64,000 nt of DNA from Mytilus californianus (GCF_021869535.1 NW_026262604.1:19468001-19532000), one strand, 5' to 3'. Positions 1,913 through 12,906 are shown, numbered from the stretch's first letter. Notes: generated by a model from the letters alone, not told the origin. Numbers and translations: made by a program.

Positions 1913-2183
1913 ATGGAGAAGATGGGTTCAGTTTTTGTTTTGGTGATTTTGGTAACATGTAGCTATAGAGTTTTGGGTTTTGGGAACCTTGCACACAAGT
2001 ATAACGACTATGTATATCCAGGGCGGACTGCAACATCTAACACTGGCAATGGTGTTCATCCAGAGGGTACCACGACATTTAAGTTTGACCATGAGGTATA
2101 TCCAGAGGGGACACAAACTTTTAAGTATGATAATCCTGTAATACCGGAGCCAGTTAAACATGGACATACTGAGAAGAAAACAA
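1913..2183 (+). CDS. Exon R1: signal peptide plus ~4 copies of a 14-aa Tyr/Thr-rich repeat; secreted or surface protein
   Basis: M(EKM)GSVFVLVILVTCSYRVLG is a hydrophobic leader, followed by YNDYVYPGRTATSN/TGNGVHPEGTTTFK/FDHEVYPEGTQTFK. It ends at a phase-1 donor A|GTGAGT (2184) and is homologous to 5306-6095. Confidence 0.8.
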
Positions 2184-2224
2184 GTGAGTATTTAATGTTT
2201 ATAGTGTTTTATTTTGCATTAATG

Positions 2225-2530
2225 TAAAAACAAAGGGGTGAGCAAATGAGAAAAATATCCACCAGCGAGAAAATGAGTTAAATGTAAGTAAATATAAGCA
2301 ACGGTACGGTCTTCGACAATGAGAAAAACCCGTACCGTATAGTCTGATATAAAAGGCCTCGAAAAAATGCAGTAGAGAAAACTAACGGCCTAATTCAAAA
2401 CAAAACAAAACGTTTGACAAACATGAACCAACGATAACCAATGAATTTTTGGCTCCTGATTTGGTACAGGTTTCAAATGAATGTTGCGTGGTTAAAACTT
2501 GTTTTATGAGTGCTCCCCGACCCCCATAGA
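2225..2530 (+). mobile_element. Short interspersed repeat, family A (degenerate, long form)
   Basis: Similar to the copies at 4705-4880, 9015-9200, 14850-15180, 17150-17285 and 31830-32020. Confidence 0.6.
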
Positions 2531-3619
2531 TCAAAGGTTGGTGCCTTATGAAACTCGTTCTACGAATATGGAGTAATTTGAGAGTTCGAAAGGTGTTACG
2601 ATTACGCAGGCTACAGCAGCGTAACAATAGGTGAAAACGTATCGAAATGTTCTGGTTTTTTCATCAAAGCAGGATTATTGCTTTTTTCACTTTTATGTCC
2701 TGCCATATTGGCGTTTTCCTGCACATTCTATTCAATTGTTTCCGCACATCGTTTTAACGATCAAATCAAACGTTAGACTTTATCAACAAAAATGACTGAA
2801 AGTTTCTAGTAAACACGTTTAAGATAATTTCAATTCAGTTTCTACTATACCTACCAAGATTTTTACTTTTTTATTTGCTGCTAGTGATTAGCATTTCTGG
2901 ATATAAATTAAGGGAGTTTTAATTTTTACAATGTGTATTTTGATATTGTCCGTTTAAGTAAACTACAAAGTGATGATTTGTATAATTACATTGGTGTGAC
3001 TTACAAAGCATATACATTTCTATGGCATTATGTGCAGTAATCAAAACTACCGAGAAACTTTGAAGTACTAAACAAATACTTATTTTTAGCTTTCTATTGA
3101 AAATAGTTTTACGATTACTACACAATTTAAAATCAATTCTAAGGACATGTTTTTAACTTAATGTAAAACATTTAGTTGTACAGGTTATCTAAATAGCATA
3201 AAAAGTACTGTAAATTCTGAAATGATTGCGAAGTTTTTATTGATCGATAATGCGACCTTGTGATTTATGCAATAAAAAGAAGTCGCATTCTGATATCGGA
3301 TACATATACCTGTATGCAGCCTTTTCTGAAATTGCAACAATTAATCTCGCACTTTTGCCCATTCTTCAAAAATCGCAATAATAATATCACGCAATAATTT
3401 CTGAATTTACAGTATTGTAAAAGATAAGGATTTATAAACCATTTATTTTGTGTTTCCATAACCTTTTTTTCTTTTAGTTTTAATTGTCCGATCACCCTTT
3501 CACAGAAACAATATGTTTTGAAGGGGTGTGATATCTAACAGGAGATTTTTGGAAGAAACAAAAATATCTGATTGAAATGGGTAACGCTTTGGACTTTAAA
3601 ACATTGTGTTTTCCCGTAG

Positions 3620-3684
3620 GTGATTACGCCCACTATATCAATAATTTTAACGGTATAATTTCAGCTGTAATTTTAACCTTATAA
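3620..3684 (+). CDS. Candidate short terminal exon for R1 (SDYAHYINNFNGIISAVILTL*)
   Basis: Good acceptor (TGTGTTTTCCCGTAG|G), phase-1 compatible, with a short hydrophobic tail. There is no homology support. Confidence 0.2.
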
Positions 3685-4704
3685 TTTGAGGAAAATAATA
3701 AGGTTTGCTTGTAGGCCTTCACAGCGTCATTATACATAGATTCCCCTAATTACCATCCATAATCATCCAAAGCAAATAAATATCAGGATAACAAAATATT
3801 TCGATGTTTTACTGGAATACTTGCGTTTTAATTGTTAGAGACTTATTCAACTGTTACGGTTCTTATACATCATTGGCTTTCAATTATTCGGCTTTGGGTG
3901 TTCAGAAATCCAGAAAAGCGTAATTCATAAAGTCTTGTTATCATTTTTTATTCAGAAAGAAATGTTACAATATTTCTACAGCAAATATAAGGCCCATTGT
4001 TCAATAAGGTCTATAGTTGATATAGGTAAAAAGTCGTTAACGCTTTTACTGAATATTTTGTCTCTAGTGCGATAGCTGATGTCAGTGTAATAATGTGATG
4101 TTGATTTTCAAAAACTAGACCAATTATCAGTAAACTATGGAAATATGAAAAACAAACTCTTTAGTTCAATTTTGATCATGCAGAAGCGTCTGTCTAGATA
4201 TCCAGATGTCGTTAATCATAAAACAAATTTCTATTCAAGTTGGTAATATTCAATTAAGGTTGGTTATAGTTATTCATGTCTAACCCCTAACTGACTGTAA
4301 ATAGTTTCATAGTGCAACTTTTAAAGTATTACCCGTTTTCAAGATCTTGCGTTTTTACAAAAATCTATCTCAAATAATTTAATTTGTATTCACATTGAGC
4401 TCTATTAATTGAAGCATGACGTAGAAATTGACCTACCGTGAACTTACTTTCAATATTTAATTTTAGAAAAAAGTAAACCTGAGTCAAAAGGGCTAAAGTA
4501 CTATGTCCCAGATCATAGTAGCTAAACTGGAGTAAGCGTTGTTGATTTTAATCAGTTTTTTTTAATAAAAGGAATCAAGATTGGTGCATGTGTTAAATTA
4601 CATCAACAACTGATATTTTTTTTTACATTTTTGTCAACTTTTCATAAACATCAAAAGACTTAATCCATCTATCAGTAAACTGCGGGCTTCTGTCTTTATA
4701 TATA

Positions 4705-4880
4705 TAGATAGAAGATGTGGTATGAGTGCCAATGAGACAACTCTCCATCCAAGTTACAATGTGTAAAAGTAAACCATTATAGGTCATAGTACGGCCTTCA
4801 ACACGGAGCCTTGGCTCACACCGAACAGCAAGCTATAAAGGGCCCAAAAATGACTAGTGTAAAACCATTCAAACAGGAAT
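4705..4880 (+). mobile_element. Short interspersed repeat, family A (AGATGTGGTATGAGTGCCAATGAGACAAC...)
   Basis: Near-identical to the reverse complement of 9015-9200 and 31830-32020; flanked by (AT)n runs. Confidence 0.85.
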
Positions 4881-5305
4881 ATATATATATATATTTCCTG
4901 AGTTAATGATGTCTAAAATTCTTTTACCCCAGACTGATTGTAAGTGTTAACTGCAAACATAAACTTAGTTCATTTATCAGTAAAGCACTAGATAAAATAA
5001 CAACGTTTCAATATGTATCTTTAACGTGACCAAATCGTCTCTGCTTTACTTTTTCATGAGATTCTGATTCAAAACCTGATACATACATTTTATTTTTCTT
5101 TGGAAATCGTATTGGAACTATAAATGTTAAAATGGCATTTATTATTACATGAAAATAATTCATTGGCATTTTGACAAACGGTATTATCTAATAACATTTT
5201 AATTAATGGAATGTTGGTTTGTTATAAATGTTAATTCTGCCAACATATATACATTCAAATAACACAGTGGTTTAGGAGAACATATTTGTGTTCAGCCTTG
5301 ATAAA

Positions 5306-6095
5306 ATGTGTTCAGTCTTTTTCTTTGCAATTTTGGCAACTTGTACAGTTTCCAGTTTTGAAAATTTAGATAATAAGAATGTTTATGTATCTTCAGGACA
5401 AACATCAGCAAAAACGTATGACAATGGTTTATATCTAGAGCGGACATCAACATCCAACTCTGACCACGTGGTATCTTCAGGACAAACAGCAGCAAACACG
5501 TATGAAGATGGTTTGTATCCAGAGCGGACCATAACATCCATCTCTAACCACGCGGTATCTTCAGGACAAACAGCAGCATACACGTATGACAATGGTTTAT
5601 ATCCAAAGCGGACCATAACATCCAACTCTGACCACGTGGTATCTTCAGGACAAACAGTAGCATATACGTATGACGATGGTTTACATGCAGAGCGGACAAC
5701 AACTTCCAACTTTAACAACAGGGTATTTTCAAAGGGTTTCCTACTCTACGGTTATGACCACCATGTATATCCAGTAAGTTCTACACGCTCTAAGTATGAA
5801 CACGGCGGTGTTTATCTAAAGAGGACAACAACATACAAGTACGCCAATGGTGTTTATCAAGATAAGATGTCAACATCAAAGTATGGCAATGCTTTAAATC
5901 CAGAACATGTAGTCACATCCAATGTTTACCATGGTGTGTACCCAGAGGGAGCGACATTATTCAACAATGGCAATGATGTAAATGCGATGAGGACAAACAA
6001 ATCCCAACAGGATAATGATGTGTATCCAGATGGTACTACAACATATATCTATGACTATGAGCCGACTGAAGTTATAAATCTTCAGGGCCAAAGTA
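5306..6095 (+). CDS. Exon R2: signal peptide plus ~16 copies of the 14-aa repeat
   Basis: The MCSVFFFAILATCTVSS leader aligns with the R1 leader at DNA level, including upstream sequence. Repeats such as YDNGLYPKRTITSN/SDHVVSSGQTVAYT form an 84-bp higher-order array (~5380-5720). Phase-1 donor A|GTAAGT at 6096. Confidence 0.85.
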
Positions 6096-7070
6096 GTAAG
6101 TGTTTGAATACAAGTCTTGTGAAAATCGTCATCGAATCTGGTCTTATCGTATCCATTTTGTTTTTGTATGAAAATATTTTCATTCTATAAATTATTTTAT
6201 TTACAATAAATTGATACTGTAGAAATACAATAATTTTCTTTTAAGTGAATTAAGTCTAACAAAAGTTAATTAAAGGAGAATTAAGTAAATGCATTGATAA
6301 GGCCAGTTGTGTACTTATTTCAGTCACTAATTGTGACCAAAAAAAAAATGAAAATAGACATGATAGGTAGTCTGTTATTGACAATTTCCTAAATTAAATT
6401 TTGCAGACTTGACGGGTGGGTTTTATTGTTTTGTCACTGAGAATATATTTCAATACTTATTATTTTTTTTACATAATTGTTCAACCATTCATTGTTTAAT
6501 ACATTTTCAATTGGTAAGATATGAGATTGGGCCGTCAATACTTTTTTCTTTAAAATATTTTACCATTTAAGTACAGTGGGTACATATGCTCGGTTAAATA
6601 AAAGAACTTAAATTCTACCATCTGATGATTTTTTTGTTAAAATTTCAAAAGAAATATTTGTTTTTAAACTGAAATTTTACCCTTATTACAATGTGTTTGT
6701 CTGTGCAAGAAAAAGGGGACATTTTTTTTTTAAAACCAAAATATTCTGTTTATATTCTGAAATCGGATCAGTTCTATATTCTTAACGTTACATTTATTAC
6801 AGTTTGAATGTATTTGATGACATTTGGATAAATATTTATCAATTGATACAAGATTGACATAAGCGTTATTTTTAACACATGTTCAAACTACTTACATTTT
6901 TGTCCTTCCTGTCTTTAAATTCACGATCAGTGTACTAAAAAAAATAATACCAATTTACCTCAACTAATGCGCAAATGCTCCAGAAGAAAATGTTTATTGT
7001 CTGTCGTAAATGAGTTACTCCTTTGTTTTCAGAGATTAAAAGTTTCTTATTTTTATATAAAACTATACAG

Positions 7071-7550
7071 ATATAACATTGATGTTTTTAGAGCGAACCA
7101 CAAGAAACAAGTCAACTGCTCTTGGTGTAAATAATAAACGAACCAAAAGATTTATGTCTGGTTATGGCGTCTATCCAGTGCAAGCCACAACATCAATATT
7201 TGACGATAGTGTGTTACAAGAATGGACCACAAGATACAATTATGACCATGGTGTATACCCCAAGGGGACCAGAACCTCCAAATACGGTTCTGCTGTATAT
7301 CCAGAGAATACCAAAAGATACAACTTTGACCATAGTATGTACCCCAAGGGGACCAGATCCTCCAAGTATGGTTATGGTGTATATCCAGAGCGGACCACAA
7401 GATACAACTATAACCATAGTGTATACCCCAAGGGGACCAGAATCTCTAAGTATGGTTATGATGTATATCCAGATGGGACCACAGAACATTTGTATGAAAA
7501 TGATGTTACAACAGAGCCAGCTATAAGTGTAGACCCTCAGGAGAAAACAC
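7071..7550 (+). CDS. Exon R3: internal phase 1-1 exon with ~9 copies of the 14-aa repeat
   Basis: Acceptor TATACAG|AT at 7070 and donor C|GTGAGT at 7551. Repeats YDHGVYPKGTRTSK/YGSAVYPENTKRYN alternate. The exon end (EKT|gtgagtattta) matches the R1 end. No signal peptide. Confidence 0.8.
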
Positions 7551-7959
7551 GTGAGTATTTACAGAAAAGGTATCTCACTAAAGTACCTATCGTCAATATG
7601 TGTTATTAGTAAATATCCTATTTTGCATGCCTATTTGTTGTTTATGTATAGCTCCTTACTGTCATTTATTAAAAAAAAATAATAAAGATTGTTTAAACTA
7701 ATCTTTATGCTTTGGAAATATTTTGACATTGTGAAAAGAGAGAATAATAGCTAAGCTTTTATTTCGATCTTAAGTATTAAAGATGATTAGTGTTGTATTT
7801 GCAATTTTGCCAAAATTAATGTTATTATAGTTATATATTTGATGTATTCCATTTGTAATAGCTGGTAGATCAATTATGATCAATTATGATCAATTCACCG
7901 CAATATTTTTGTATTGTTTGGTCCTTTGTGAGTTGTTCCAAATAATTTATTAGCTATAC

Positions 7960-8110
7960 CTGTGCACACCCCGCTTTTTGTTTTTCATGACGTTGGTCTT
8001 GCTCAGTTTTAGTTTTCTATGTTGTGTTTTATAGACTGTTGTTTGTATTTTGGAATATCTCTGTCAGTTTATCTTTGACTGAAGTGTTTGAATAACCCTT
8101 TGACTTTTTT
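7960..8110 (+). mobile_element. Short repeat, family B (…TTAGTTTTCTATGTTGTGTTTT…), probably the 3' region of a Penelope-like element
   Basis: Other copies lie at 16890-16995, 26915-27115 (-), 30290-30470 and ~34700-34855 (-). The PLE origin is inference. Confidence 0.6.
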
Positions 8111-8289
8111 CCTGCCTCTATTTTACAGTAAAGGTCATATTTTGACGTTTGTTAAACAAATGAATGGATATCAATTATATAACAAACTTTTTTTATGCAA
8201 ACAACGAATTATAGTCATTTCGTACCCTAACCATTTCGTACCTCCCATTTCGTACCCTTGCAAAAACCATTTCGTACCCTGACCATATC

Positions 8290-8660
8290 TTACCTTGACC
8301 ATTTCGTACCTCATGGAATATATACATGTATACCATTTCGTACCTCATGGAATATTTACATGTATACTATTTCCTCATGGAAGTTTATATGTATGCCAAT
8401 TCGTACCTCATGTAAGATTTATATATATTTGCCATTCTGTATCTCATAGAAAATTTATATGTTTTTGATTTTTTGGTAAAAACTGTCTCATTGATGTGCG
8501 CCATTTTATACCTTATGGAAGAGTTATATGTATACCATTTTGTACCTCATGAAAGATTTGTATGTATGTATACCATTTTGTACCTCATGGAAGATTTGTA
8601 TGTATGTATACCATTTCGTACCTCATGAACGATTTGTATGTATGTATACCATTTTGTATA
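8290..8660 (+). repeat. Minisatellite, ~34-40-bp unit (TATACCATTT[C/T]GTACCTCATGGAA...)
   Basis: About 9 visible tandem units derived from the subterminal motif of the 8210-9745 element. Confidence 0.85.
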
Positions 8661-9014
8661 CCAGTTTAGTGTGACTTTTTATTAAAATTTTATTGCAAAC
8701 ATAGGTCAAAAAGACATTAAAATTACACCTAAGGGATTCCCCTTTACACGAAAGAATAGTTTCTACCTGTCTTGGTTTTTATCCTCCTTTATATCTTCTC
8801 AGGGAAGATGACACTGTGAATTTAGATGATCGATAAATATAACGGGAAATGGTCCTCCGTTATTATTTCTTGTATTAGTTATCAATCTTCCGACCGAGGC
8901 AGACATGAATTACCCTCCGCGGGAGTCCCGATTGATCTCGAGCCGCGTTTCCAATACTTTTAAATATACAATTCCTTGGTTAGATATTAGGATACAAAAT
9001 AAACGAACTTGTAA

Positions 9015-9200
9015 TTTAGATTAGACTGTTGGTTTTCCTGTTTGAATTATTTTACTCTAGTCATGTTTATAGCTTGCTGTTCGGTGTGAGCCAATGCTCC
9101 GCGTTGAAGGCCGCACTTTGACCTATAACTGTTAACTTTTTATACATGGTGACTTGGATGGAGAGTTTTCACATTGGCACTGATACCACATCTTCAATAT
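9015..9200 (-). mobile_element. Family A repeat nested in the foldback element
   Basis: Reverse complement of 4705-4880. Confidence 0.8.
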
Positions 9201-9779
9201 TTTCATTGTAATTTTTAAATTCAAAAGGCCATAGCAAGTTCTTTGATTGGTCACATAAGGTGCAAATTCTAATGAAAACATTCTTGGGTGAATATCAGCT
9301 TGTGTCCCTTTTCACTGCATTTCCTGACAAAAACAACTGTTAATAACTATAAAAACAGTTGCAGATAATCCTTTCTTTGATGATTAATTAATCTCTTATT
9401 TTTAGAGTTGAAAAATTAATTAAGGATAAATCCTGCTAACAAACAACGTGTAATTAAAACTATTAAAGTTTCCAAGTGCTGCTTAATCAAACCAATCATC
9501 GGTCTTTATAACATTTCTACGGCTGGATGCATTGTATTTATGTTATATTTACAAAAATTCAAATCATCTCAAAATGTTTTATATCTTAAAAAAATGTGAA
9601 CTTTTACAAATAGATGATACGAAATAGTAAAGATGTATTTTGTAAAAAATGGTAGATGCATATGGCCAATAGGGTACGAAATGGTTTTTATCGTGGGTAC
9701 GAAATGGTAAATTTTAGGTACGAAATGGCAGAGGTACGTAGTCTAAAATCATGCGAAACATGTAAAAACATTAAAAAGG

Positions 9780-10340
9780 AATACAAAAATGTTGTATGAA
9801 AAGAAAATACAAAACCAAGTAAAAACCCGTGAGAAAAAAAAATTGTTATTAAAAAGAAATGCAATTTAAATGAGTTTTAAGCTGAGATTTAAAACAATCT
9901 AGAGACTTGCATTGACTCAAACTAGAGATTGTTCCAAAGAAATGCCGCTGACCAATCAAAATATCTTTCGCTGTACGTCTTCGTCTTCGAACGGTAAGTA
10001 GTTGTGTAGAGCCTGAACGGAGAGATCGATGTGGCACGTGTGTCTTGACTAGTTCCCGATTGTACGCAGGACTGATGCCATTCAAAGTACAGTGCACATA
10101 AGTATGTTAAATTATGGTCAGTACTGAACGGGTTACCAATGCAAGTTGACAAGTATCGGTGTAATATGTTCATATTTCCTTGTCTTGTTGATTACCGAAC
10201 TGTTGTATTTTGTACTTATCTTGTTGATATTCCTGTTATCAAGTCTGGATCTTACTATAGAGTGTAATAGTGTCTCACATATATGCAGCTGTTGTTATAA
10301 AGCTGCGAATGAGTCCACTATTACTGATGTGAAATGACAA
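9780..10340 (-). mobile_element. 3' fragment of an L2/CR1-group non-LTR retrotransposon (degenerate RT C-terminus and tail)
   Basis: Minus-strand frames give RKYEHITPILVNLHW, SLRSGSTQLL, KTKTYSERYFDWSAAFLWNNL and KSLDCFKSQLKTHL, with stops and frameshifts. Confidence 0.85.
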
Positions 10341-10489
10341 CATTTGACTTTGGCAGATACTTGCTGTTCCATTGTTTTATCATAATATACTCCTAGGAGT
10401 TTTACACAGGATACGCACAGTATTGCCGACTTTGATGTGGATATTTGTTACACTTGCGTTCAAATGTTTCGGTGTGAATATGATACGTT

Positions 10490-10720
10490 CGGTTTTATCT
10501 TGATTAAGTTTTAACGTATTTTTTGACATCCATGAACAAACATCGGAAAGACACAGTTCGAGTTTTGAAAAGTAATTCTCCAGGTGTCTGCCGGCTTTAT
10601 GACCATGTATACTTGTGTATCTTCCATTTTATCTTGATTAAGTTTAACATATTTTTTTGACATCCATGAACTAATATCGGAAAGACGCAGTTCGAATTTT
10701 GAAAAGTTATTCTTAAGTTG
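10490..10720 (+). repeat. Two-copy direct repeat, ~135-bp period
   Basis: TTTTATCTTGATTAAGTTT..TTGACATCCATGAAC..ATCGGAAAGAC.CAGTTCGA.TTTTGAAAAGT occurs twice. Confidence 0.8.
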
Positions 10721-10754
10721 ATTATTTCAGCTTTCCAATTGTAGACAATCCATT

Positions 10755-10955
10755 TCTATGCAGCAACATTCTAGCAGCGCCTGCATATTGAGTAAATATC
10801 TCCCAGTCGATACGAAATTCCAGATGTCTTATCATGATTATTTGATGGAGAATAGCTGCTCACATGGAAGCTATTAAACTAAGAGTTGTAAGTAGTGAAG
10901 CTGAAATCATCTCTTCGAAAATTTTACGGACGGCACCACGGGTTGACCGTTATAA
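10755..10955 (+). mobile_element. Penelope-like element RT C-terminal fragment
   Basis: Degenerate CSNILAAPAY..NISQSIR and KLKSSLRKFYGRHH..DRY, typical of the end of mollusc PLE RTs. Confidence 0.8.
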
Positions 10956-11087
10956 ACATAAGAAAAATACAAAAACAAGAAGCTAACTTGGACAAAAACA
11001 AAAGAACACCAACATTTCCAAAATAACCATTTCTCTTTAAAATAGATATTATATACATTTTGTTTTTGTATTACTTTCTTATTTTAG

Positions 11088-12784
11088 AACTTGGAAGACA
11101 GGTGCCATGTGAAATTATCAATATAACCGATACTGTGTCGCCTAATGCCAGGGGTAGAGTACACCATGTTGAAAAGTCCAGTCGTATGTTTTGGATATGG
11201 TTTGATGACTCAAATTATATTTCAGTTGCTCTCAGCAAAAATTGTACACACCTCATGCCAGAACCATTCAGATATGTCAGTTCGAGGGACTTACAAGAAT
11301 TGTTGGAAGACTGCCGAAACGGAACAGTTATCAAAAGGTTATTATGCAACCATTCCGTGACATACAATATCAGTTTAGTCAATGCCGTTATACCCTACTT
11401 TTCCGATGTGCGTATCTTCTTTGCTGATGGAATTAACAACTGCACAGAACTTTTCAAAAAATTTATTGAATCAAAAAAAAGCATTTTATCAAATGCACAC
11501 GTCAATAATTTTCTAACTAATAGTTCAAACTGCTGGAAATATGCTTTCTTTACTAACCAAATTATCATTGGCGTACAATTGACCGAAATAAGAAATGGTA
11601 GCGGACGTATGATATCATGATACATGTATATGAATATTAAATCACTTTTACAGAGACGCATTTGGTTCATATTGAAACACAAATCATGTAGGGAACTATT
11701 TTATCAATACGCTTATTGGAATGTGAAAATGTTTGATGATAGAGCTATTCTCAGTATTGATAATATAAATACTTTTTCTCATGAAAATAATTGTTTTGAT
11801 GTTCGCTTTCCATGCCTTTTTCCGTTCTATGATATGTATGCAACTTTACCAGATTCTACAATATCATATGTAAAAATTGTAATTGCAGTTGAAATAACAA
11901 CAGTAAATAGCGTTTTTCTATCTATATTTCTGCAAAAAGAGAACCGAACACCTGTTATCATTCTTCTGTCCGTTTTGGCTGTATCTGATACTACTACCGT
12001 GCTGTTAATGACTATTCCATTGTTTACTCTCCATGAAGTACATATGAACTTCAATGAAAGATTGGCTCTTCGTTTTGTTGACTTTCCAGAATGTGTAATT
12101 TATACTTTTCTTGACGATTTACAACATTTATTCCATTTAACATCAGTCTTCATAACAGCACTTTTGTGTCTCCAGAAAACTGTAGCTCTGCTTTTGCCAA
12201 TGTGGAGCAAACGATGTTTGAATAGCAGAGTCAGTATTATATTTTCTTTTTTTGTCTTTTTCATAAGTATTTGCATGAGTTCACCAAAACTTGTGGAAAA
12301 TCTTATCAGCATTAAGAATTTCAACGGCAGATGTTGTTCAACTTTTTCTACTGATACATTCAGTTACCATTTCACTATAACTAACGCTTGTTACCTTGTA
12401 TCTTGTTTGGTAGTGGCTATATGTACTGTTTATATAATATGCAAATTAACCTGCCTGAGAAGAAATCTCCCGTGGACCGATAGTCCTGTTGTTCAGAGAA
12501 GAAACCGTATCTCAGCAATTACGGTTGTGACCATTTGTATCATATTTTTGCTATCTGAGTCGGCGCTTATTGTCGTATCTTTCACGACTATGCTTTATCT
12601 TTTTGACCCATCGTACTGGCAGATATTGTATGTTGCGAAATCTACATTGACAAAATATACGGACATTAGTCTTATGTTTGGGTTCTCTCTGAACTTCATA
12701 GTTTACATTGTAATGAGTAAGCAGATACGTGATAAATTAGTTATTGGCGTTATAAGGATTGCAAGATGCTGTAAATGTTGGTGA
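11088..12784 (+). CDS. Rhodopsin-like (class A) GPCR, FMRFamide/sex-peptide-receptor-like, with a long N-glycosylated ectodomain; interrupted by an in-frame TGA at 11618-11620
   Basis: ORFs 11060-11620 and 11624-12784 share one frame. Strong phase-1 acceptor (TTTCTTATTTTAG|AA) at 11087. Seven hydrophobic segments, LAVSD in TM2, LQK in place of DRY, conserved ECL Cys, LNFIVY in TM7. Many N-x-S/T sites. Confidence 0.85.
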
Positions 12785-12839
12785 AGAATGACAATATCTT
12801 ATGACAAACATTAATATTAAAACCGTTAATATGAAAAGA

Positions 12840-12906
12840 GAGACACAGAAAGAGAGAGAGAGAGAAAGAGATAGAGAGAGATATAAAAAAAAGAGAGAGA
12901 GAGAGA
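12840..12906 (+). repeat. (GA)n microsatellite
   Basis: Interrupted GA dinucleotide run downstream of the GPCR stop. Confidence 0.9.

Follow-up and report, generated by a model that had tools for sequence, protein, structure and literature searches.

How do long arrays of tandem repeats relate to the receptor exon that follows them on the same strand of a mussel chromosome? The question is raised by a stretch of 64,000 nucleotides (nt) of the Mytilus californianus genome (GCF_021869535.1 NW_026262604.1:19468001-19532000), hereafter the window. Its plus strand holds four long open frames between 1883 and 12784, in a background of 30-36% G+C: R1 and R2, each of which begins with its own signal peptide, R3, an internal repeat exon, and a receptor exon that encodes an extracellular region followed by seven transmembrane helices (7TM; Table 1). 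An earlier interpretation, made from the DNA alone (the sequence-only reading), had proposed a G-protein-coupled receptor (GPCR) with a Tyr-rich repeat stalk and alternative signal-peptide first exons. Our analysis suggests that the window holds one unit in a tandem cluster of a very divergent class A-like receptor family known so far only from Mytilus, in which repeat exons are fused to the receptor, and that this particular copy is interrupted; we assign this reading a probability of about 0.7.

Linkage of the repeat exons to the receptor exon

The positions, splice motifs and phases of the four exons can be read directly in the DNA, and they are those given by the sequence-only reading. R1 closes with the donor ACAA/GTGAGT after 2183, R2 with AGTA/GTAAGT after 6095, and R3 with ACAC/GTGAGT after 7550, each in phase 1. 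R3 has two in-phase acceptors, 7071 and 7092 (tttttag/AG), of which 7092 is the better match to two M. coruscus protein models (P0006 and P0013) and to the paralogues. The receptor exon opens in phase 1 behind the acceptor at 11087 (tattttag/AA, first base 11088) with neither a Met nor a signal peptide, both of these points being as claimed. R1 and R2 do carry their own signal peptides, that of R2 being related to that of R1, and they share homologous upstream DNA (1687-1791 matches 5067-5171 at 74%). Homologues of R1 with a signal peptide and the same donor occur in the unit upstream of the window, in the unit at locus L003, and in M. coruscus.

The repeats run in a single register of 14 amino acids (aa) through R1, R2, and R3 and are arranged in tandem repeats of 84 nt (2 x 14 aa), four copies of which, inside R2, have 88% identity. 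R2 and R3 together hold about 28 units of 14 aa, where about 25 had been proposed. Without the signal peptides, the repeat part comprises 464 aa, with 12.7% Thr, 10.6% Tyr, 8.4% Ser, and no Cys, and 31 of its 49 Tyr residues lie no more than three residues from Asp or Glu. The word "stalk" does not suit this array: the repeats form the far N-terminus, distal to the folded outer domain, and are not placed between that domain and the membrane.

The argument for joining repeats and receptor is comparative, and it is strong. Searching the M. californianus genome with the 7TM part gave 109 matches, and the family comprises more than 100 loci. Most of the matches lie in open frames of 570-640 aa that start just before a conserved Cys motif and have no signal peptide; in paralogues down to about 35% identity, the frame opens at a polypyrimidine-AG just ahead of this motif. 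A signal peptide inside the same frame is found only in the most distant members (28-30% identity; L040-L043), and closer members (L036-L038, L044-L047) begin at a phase-1 acceptor. Because its frame has no signal peptide, the receptor exon needs an upstream signal-peptide exon in phase 1, as seen in an NCBI-annotated M. trossulus model, where an intron of 6.2 kb separates a phase-1 signal-peptide exon of 79 nt from a single receptor exon.

With few exceptions, the matches to R2 and R3 in the genome are followed on their own strand by a receptor exon. Layout was examined at 14 paralogous loci on four chromosomes, 13 of which have signal-peptide/repeat exons upstream of the receptor exon on the same strand, with no matches on the minus strand; the donor of every intact repeat exon at these loci is GT[AG]AG in phase 1. 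In one clade, the repeat is a different one, GVSSEQTTTYIDDG, and is carried by a single signal-peptide exon that precedes the receptor exon by 13-15 kb. The last repeat exon and the receptor exon are separated by only about 0.4-0.8 kb in three units, and in the L003 unit ...AAAACAA/GTGAGT stands about 550 nt from ...TTATTTTAG/GA. Repeats, outer domain, and 7TM occur together in public protein models from M. coruscus (P0001, P0006, P0013), M. galloprovincialis (P0003), and M. edulis (P0048). In P0013, the orthologue of the window gene, the sequence ...GEKT-K-LGRQMTCDIINITD... (EKT-K-LGRQ) corresponds exactly to the predicted 7550>11088 junction. P0013 and P0048 each merge two neighboring cluster units, so that repeats and an outer domain are followed by a second set of repeats, a second outer domain, and the 7TM in a single protein.

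Like these loci, the window has signal-peptide/repeat exons with phase-1 donors upstream of a phase-1 receptor exon. Linkage, compact units, and gene models together indicate that, as a family design, the repeat exons very probably splice onto a one-exon rhodopsin-type receptor. The splicing proposed earlier thus probably holds for the family, but is not supported for the window copy, which has a nonsense codon before the first transmembrane helix (TM1). From the exons, their phases, and their linkage, we infer splicing in the order R2 (and/or R1), R3, receptor exon.

Several results weigh against this fusion. If the gene models that support it were predicted ab initio, as may be the case, they would draw on the very same compatibility of phase and would not be fully independent evidence; we therefore take them as agreement, not as proof. 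The RNA check of the junctions that had been suggested found no joints in one RNA run (X6, 6% read) over 5700-11699, and no reads on R2 or R3. Comparison of a 201-aa piece of P0013 with a public collection recovered no short junction-spanning proteins, and Logan contigs of the family member P0014 are transcript-sized yet unspliced. Run X6 did have about four reads on 11100-11699, which come from an allele or a close copy. Three other runs (X3, X4, X1) gave no junctions over 5700-11699, and two of them (X3, X4) behave as DNA. A run search with the receptor exon found no indexed RNA run containing the exon, and residues 430-760 of P0006, used as a query, matched only M. coruscus models.

The absence of a junction in that RNA run would also suit two separate genes, in which the repeats are stand-alone secreted Tyr/Thr-rich proteins, the receptor uses another, unrecognized signal-peptide exon, and co-duplication of the cassette keeps the two linked. 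Translation continued past any of the donors meets a stop after a few to about 30 codons, so that a retained intron could yield a secreted repeat protein; in addition, no receptor match is listed near a few of the repeat matches (C2:24.23 Mb, C132). We consider this arrangement improbable, given that each intact repeat exon still has a strong phase-1 donor precisely at its end, even in units on other chromosomes whose receptor exons are only about 50% identical, that the gap between repeat and receptor exons is as short as noted above in three units, and that the receptor exon requires a phase-1 signal-peptide exon upstream, as in the M. trossulus model. The sequence-only reading had also named a possible private terminal exon for the repeats, a mini-exon at 3620-3684; this was rejected, being no better conserved than the surrounding intron. 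Repeats as a separate secreted protein family are accordingly the less likely reading. Repeat matches without a listed receptor nearby are found at C2:24226783-24229720 (minus strand) and at C24:32365430, and may represent repeat genes in their own right or units in which the receptor went unscored.

Table 1. Exons and related features of the receptor unit, in window coordinates.
Feature	Position	Strand	Description
R1, signal-peptide exon	1913..2183	+	ATG 1913, MEKMGSVFVLVILVTCSYRVLG..., about 4.5 repeat units of 14 aa
R2, second signal-peptide exon	5306..6095	+	ATG 5306, MCSVFFFAILATCTVSS..., about 17.5 repeat units
R3, internal phase 1-1 repeat exon	7092..7550	+	about 11 units, no start codon
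Intron, R3 to receptor exon	7551..11087	+	swollen by high-copy repeats
Receptor exon, first part	11088..11854	+	extracellular region of about 255 aa, conserved Cys
In-frame nonsense codon TGA	11618-11620	+	GGA (Gly) in twin copy
Receptor exon, 7TM part	11855..12784	+	7TM, helix 8, and C-terminal CCKCW; stop codon 12782-12784

The intron ahead of the receptor exon had been described as derived from transposable elements, which fits its copy number: much of 7900-9700 and of 10700-11099 is present in very high copy, with depths from thousands to 488,000 compared with about 25 for single-copy sequence. An extremely abundant element occupies 8900-9300, and also 7900-8700 and 10700-11099; two DNA data sets put its summed contig depth at 150,000-488,000, and the few RNA reads fell mainly on it. 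At 8216-8667 there is a satellite-like array whose periods range from 16 to 76 nt. The receptor stop codon is directly followed by a microsatellite, (AG)n, with about 35 units at 12833-12906.

The in-frame stop and the twin copy

R2, R3, and the receptor exon do add up to the 2967 nt that the sequence-only reading had counted, but the open frame of about 988 aa derived from this sum is refuted. No 988-aa product can come from this copy because an in-frame TGA closes the frame after 176 codons of the outer domain, about 80 codons ahead of TM1. Removal of the TGA by a mini-intron was considered and rejected: a donor at 11598 or 11607 joined to an acceptor at 11653 would excise 56 or 47 nt, lengths that are not divisible by 3, and the paralogues continue in frame across the site. 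Since the stop precedes TM1, the spliced exons of this copy would encode at best a secreted protein of about 600 aa, with the repeats and most of the outer domain but no transmembrane helix.

The best genome match to the 7TM part lies 251 kb upstream on the same contig, at 98% protein identity. In this twin the frame is open through outer domain and 7TM, whereas in the window it is not (...MISGYMYMN... in the twin, ...MIS(stop)YMYMN... in the window). Over 1697 bases, the receptor exons of window and twin show 10 differences (99.4% identity), among them GGA>TGA. Contigs of two other DNA data sets have only G at 11618, the first base of the codon, and the M. coruscus orthologue has Gly at this position. 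With GGA or G in the twin, in both of these data sets, and in M. coruscus, the stop must be young and is known so far from this assembly only. The window copy is thus most likely a recently disabled duplicate, or a null allele, of the intact twin, and should be flagged as interrupted in annotation.

The twin belongs to a larger duplication. The whole 64-kb window and the 10 kb upstream of it (L031), at least 74 kb in all, are colinear with C24:19203266-19278249 at 88-99% identity with kilobase indels, so that the other arm lies about 254 kb upstream. Between the two blocks are about 180 kb of other sequence that hold further family units without twins, and the presence of a family unit lacking a twin in this position favors a real segmental duplication.

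Two properties of these copies count further against the interpretation given here. All 10 differences between the receptor exons are nonsynonymous and none is synonymous, and the R1 copies have 1 synonymous versus 6-7 nonsynonymous among 7-8 changes; a pattern of almost exclusively nonsynonymous change between recent copies fits relaxed constraint as well as diversifying selection, the sites being too few to separate the two. Secondly, the extent and identity of the colinear blocks mean that the twin could be a retained haplotype instead of a true duplicate. We judge identities of 88-99% to be compatible with allelic haplotypes in mussels. The gene might then be intact in the species, with the TGA either a private null allele or a base error of the assembly, or with the twin as the other haplotype. 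The G found at 11618 in both other data sets, the mere 10 differences per 1697 nt, and the colinearity of the window and the 10 kb upstream of it with C24:19.203-19.278 Mb all speak in favor of this explanation. We nonetheless hold it to be doubtful, as the blocks stand some 180 kb apart with units between them that have no twins, and as large rearrangements separate them, the twin having a hybrid R2 and having lost R1. The absence of T from other animals is weak evidence here because contigs drop rare variants.

These rearrangements also bear on the roles of R1 and R2. The twin's R2 (a 410-aa frame) is a hybrid of the window's R2 and of R2', a further copy; together with the missing R1, it is a sign of unequal crossing-over within the repeats. 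R2' and its partner R1' form another intact pair, which lies just upstream of the window (L031 5251-5613 and 8544-9401; C24:19463251-19467401) and has phase-1 donors but no R3 or receptor exon of its own. Both R1 and R2 keep their ATG, signal peptide, and donor in intact units and in M. coruscus.

Alternative use of R1 and R2 as first exons is one of two layouts compatible with the data. According to the other, R1 would be exon 1 and R2 exon 2, entered through an internal phase-1 acceptor (tcttcag/GA) that skips the signal peptide of R2, a relic of exon duplication. Such a potential acceptor recurs in every 84-nt repeat of R2, and in P0006 and P0013 R1 is indeed joined to an internal point of R2. 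The intact twin argues otherwise, as its unit is without R1 and its R2, with ATG and signal peptide, is the only signal-peptide exon within 12 kb upstream of the receptor exon; R2 must therefore be able to act as a first exon. This layout, which we regard as possible but rather unlikely, also has against it that R2 retains its ATG and signal peptide in M. coruscus and in every intact unit.

The receptor and its outer domain

The 7TM had been described as rhodopsin-type. The 7TM open frame of the window matches Pfam 7tm_1 with 26 bits (E 7.6e-6), below the gathering cut-off of 30.5; 16 of 22 family members match this profile at E<0.01 (best 1.6e-8), and the best hit of a profile search against PDB sequences has an E of 3.8e-5. 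An AlphaFold2 (AF2) model of the outer domain and 7TM of the intact twin (mean predicted local distance difference test [pLDDT] 81.6, predicted TM-score [pTM] 0.76) contains helices at residues 256-280, 288-317, 334-368, 379-406, 422-459, 466-505, and 507-542, followed by helix 8 at 544-563. In Foldseek, this model matches structures of CCR5, NMUR2, CMKLR1, opioid receptors, SSTR2, and NTSR1 with a probability of 1.00, at E 7e-8 to 2e-6 (CCR5, NMUR2, CMKLR1, opioid) and target-normalized TM-scores of about 0.6-0.73. The seven helices, the helix 8, and the class A-like fold of the model agree with the earlier description, with the Pfam score remaining under its cut-off. The 7TM is thus modeled as class A-like, resembling peptide and chemokine receptors, with weak class A support in the sequence itself.

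Alignment of the family shows N273 (N1.50) and D300 (D2.50, LAVSD) to be invariant, and Cys335 and the "CC" of extracellular loop 2 (415/416) to be nearly so. The DRY motif is replaced by a conserved LQK and NPxxY by NFxxY, and CWxP is absent. Most family members end in ...CCKCW or ...CKCW right after helix 8 (window 12767-12781); this C-terminus may be a lipidation or sorting motif.

The extracellular region has 8 N-glycosylation sequons within its first 176 residues, and the outer domain is modeled as an alpha/beta fold (pLDDT 83.9, pTM 0.81). Foldseek comparison of this model with the PDB returned nothing at E<=0.001, an exhaustive VIA-align search found no PDB neighbor with Z >=5 (best Z 4.1), and a search of the ESM Atlas gave nothing convincing (best TM-score 0.28, best feature score 0.87). 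A profile of the domain has only 26 representatives among 1.84 billion proteins, and all of those with a name are from Mytilus. Two known receptor types were considered and set aside. An adhesion GPCR (class B2) does not agree with the lack of a GAIN or GPS match in Pfam, the class A-like 7TM, and an outer domain without a solved-fold match; an LGR-type receptor does not agree with the lack of a leucine-rich repeat (LRR) match in Pfam and an alpha/beta model without a PDB neighbor at Z >=5.

Taken together, these features suggest the following design. The seven helices and a Cys- and glycan-rich folded outer domain about 250 aa long are encoded together by one large exon. This exon starts at a phase-1 acceptor in most members and would obtain its signal peptide from an upstream exon with a phase-1 donor, and in the subfamily of the window, the upstream exon or exons would have expanded into a long array of 14-residue Tyr/Thr/Ser-rich repeats. 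The intron was probably gained after the signal peptide and before the repeat expansion, since the most distant members are apparently intronless. At its far N-terminus, the mature receptor is predicted to have a flexible tail of repeats, about 400 aa long, that is probably O-glycosylated and perhaps modified at Tyr; the folded outer domain would lie atop the 7TM bundle.

Relation to known receptor families

Lineage-specific expansions of class A GPCRs have been described in bivalves (including Mytilus), in other molluscs, and in other Lophotrochozoa, and their members are candidate chemoreceptors (PMC11886862). The family described here resembles these molluscan expansions, which are large, fast-evolving, tandemly clustered, and lineage-restricted, with many pseudogenes, few orthologues between genera, and coding sequence largely in one exon. 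What sets it apart is the addition of an orphan folded domain about 250 aa long and, in one subfamily, of an array of 14-residue repeats, 200-500 aa in length, that upstream exons supply. No mention of outer domains or N-terminal repeat arrays was found in that study (PMC11886862), and a literature search yielded no description of such an outer domain or repeat tail on receptors of this kind.

The placement of a class A 7TM behind a large extracellular region is shared with LGR/glycoprotein-hormone and relaxin receptors, in which that region binds the ligand. Unlike those receptors, the outer domain of the Mytilus family has no LRR or LDLa match in Pfam and no match to a solved fold, and its repeats are low-complexity 14-mers. 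Sulfated Tyr residues occur in the hinge of TSHR and in the N-termini of chemokine receptors, and the Mytilus Tyr residues beside acidic residues recall them. Adhesion GPCRs with mucin-like, Ser/Thr-rich stalks (class B2, e.g., EMR/CD97) likewise have a long, probably glycosylated, repeat-rich extracellular region, whereas the Mytilus 7TM is class A-like, GAIN/GPS is not detected, and the repeats are distal to the folded domain.

The organization of the 5' exons is reminiscent of the protocadherin and UGT1A loci, with tandem signal-peptide exons, homologous upstream DNA, identical donor phase, and shared downstream exons. In contrast to those loci, each Mytilus unit has two such exons (four, if the partial unit upstream is counted), and the arrangement is seen here as a DNA layout. 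The Mytilus 5' exons are also the more uniform part between units (97% at the nucleotide level), while the receptor exon is more diverged (79%).

One may speculate further that these are mussel-specific, DRY-less class A GPCRs that sense through the orphan-fold domain and the Tyr-rich 14-mer tail, the latter assembled from interchangeable signal-peptide exons and reshaped by unequal crossing-over. Modified by Tyr sulfation or 3,4-dihydroxyphenylalanine (DOPA) and by O-glycans, the tail might report contact with surfaces, microbes, or conspecific secretions, and the window copy, whose stop codon falls in the last exon and should thus spare the message from nonsense-mediated decay, might serve as a secreted decoy composed of tail and outer domain. 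We offer this scenario as a long shot.

The family is mis-annotated in current Mytilus genomes, in which public models are fragmentary or merge neighboring units. The known molluscan class A expansions consist of bare 7TM chemoreceptor candidates, and the Mytilus family would represent a different route to new receptor function, by which an orphan folded domain was fused to a 7TM in one exon, and a signal-peptide exon grew into a repeat array and was duplicated. If transcripts confirm this design, the family would be a rarity among class A receptors in having several hundred residues of repeat-rich N-terminus, and it would also provide a confident structural model, as predicted here, of a new extracellular domain found so far only in Mytilus.

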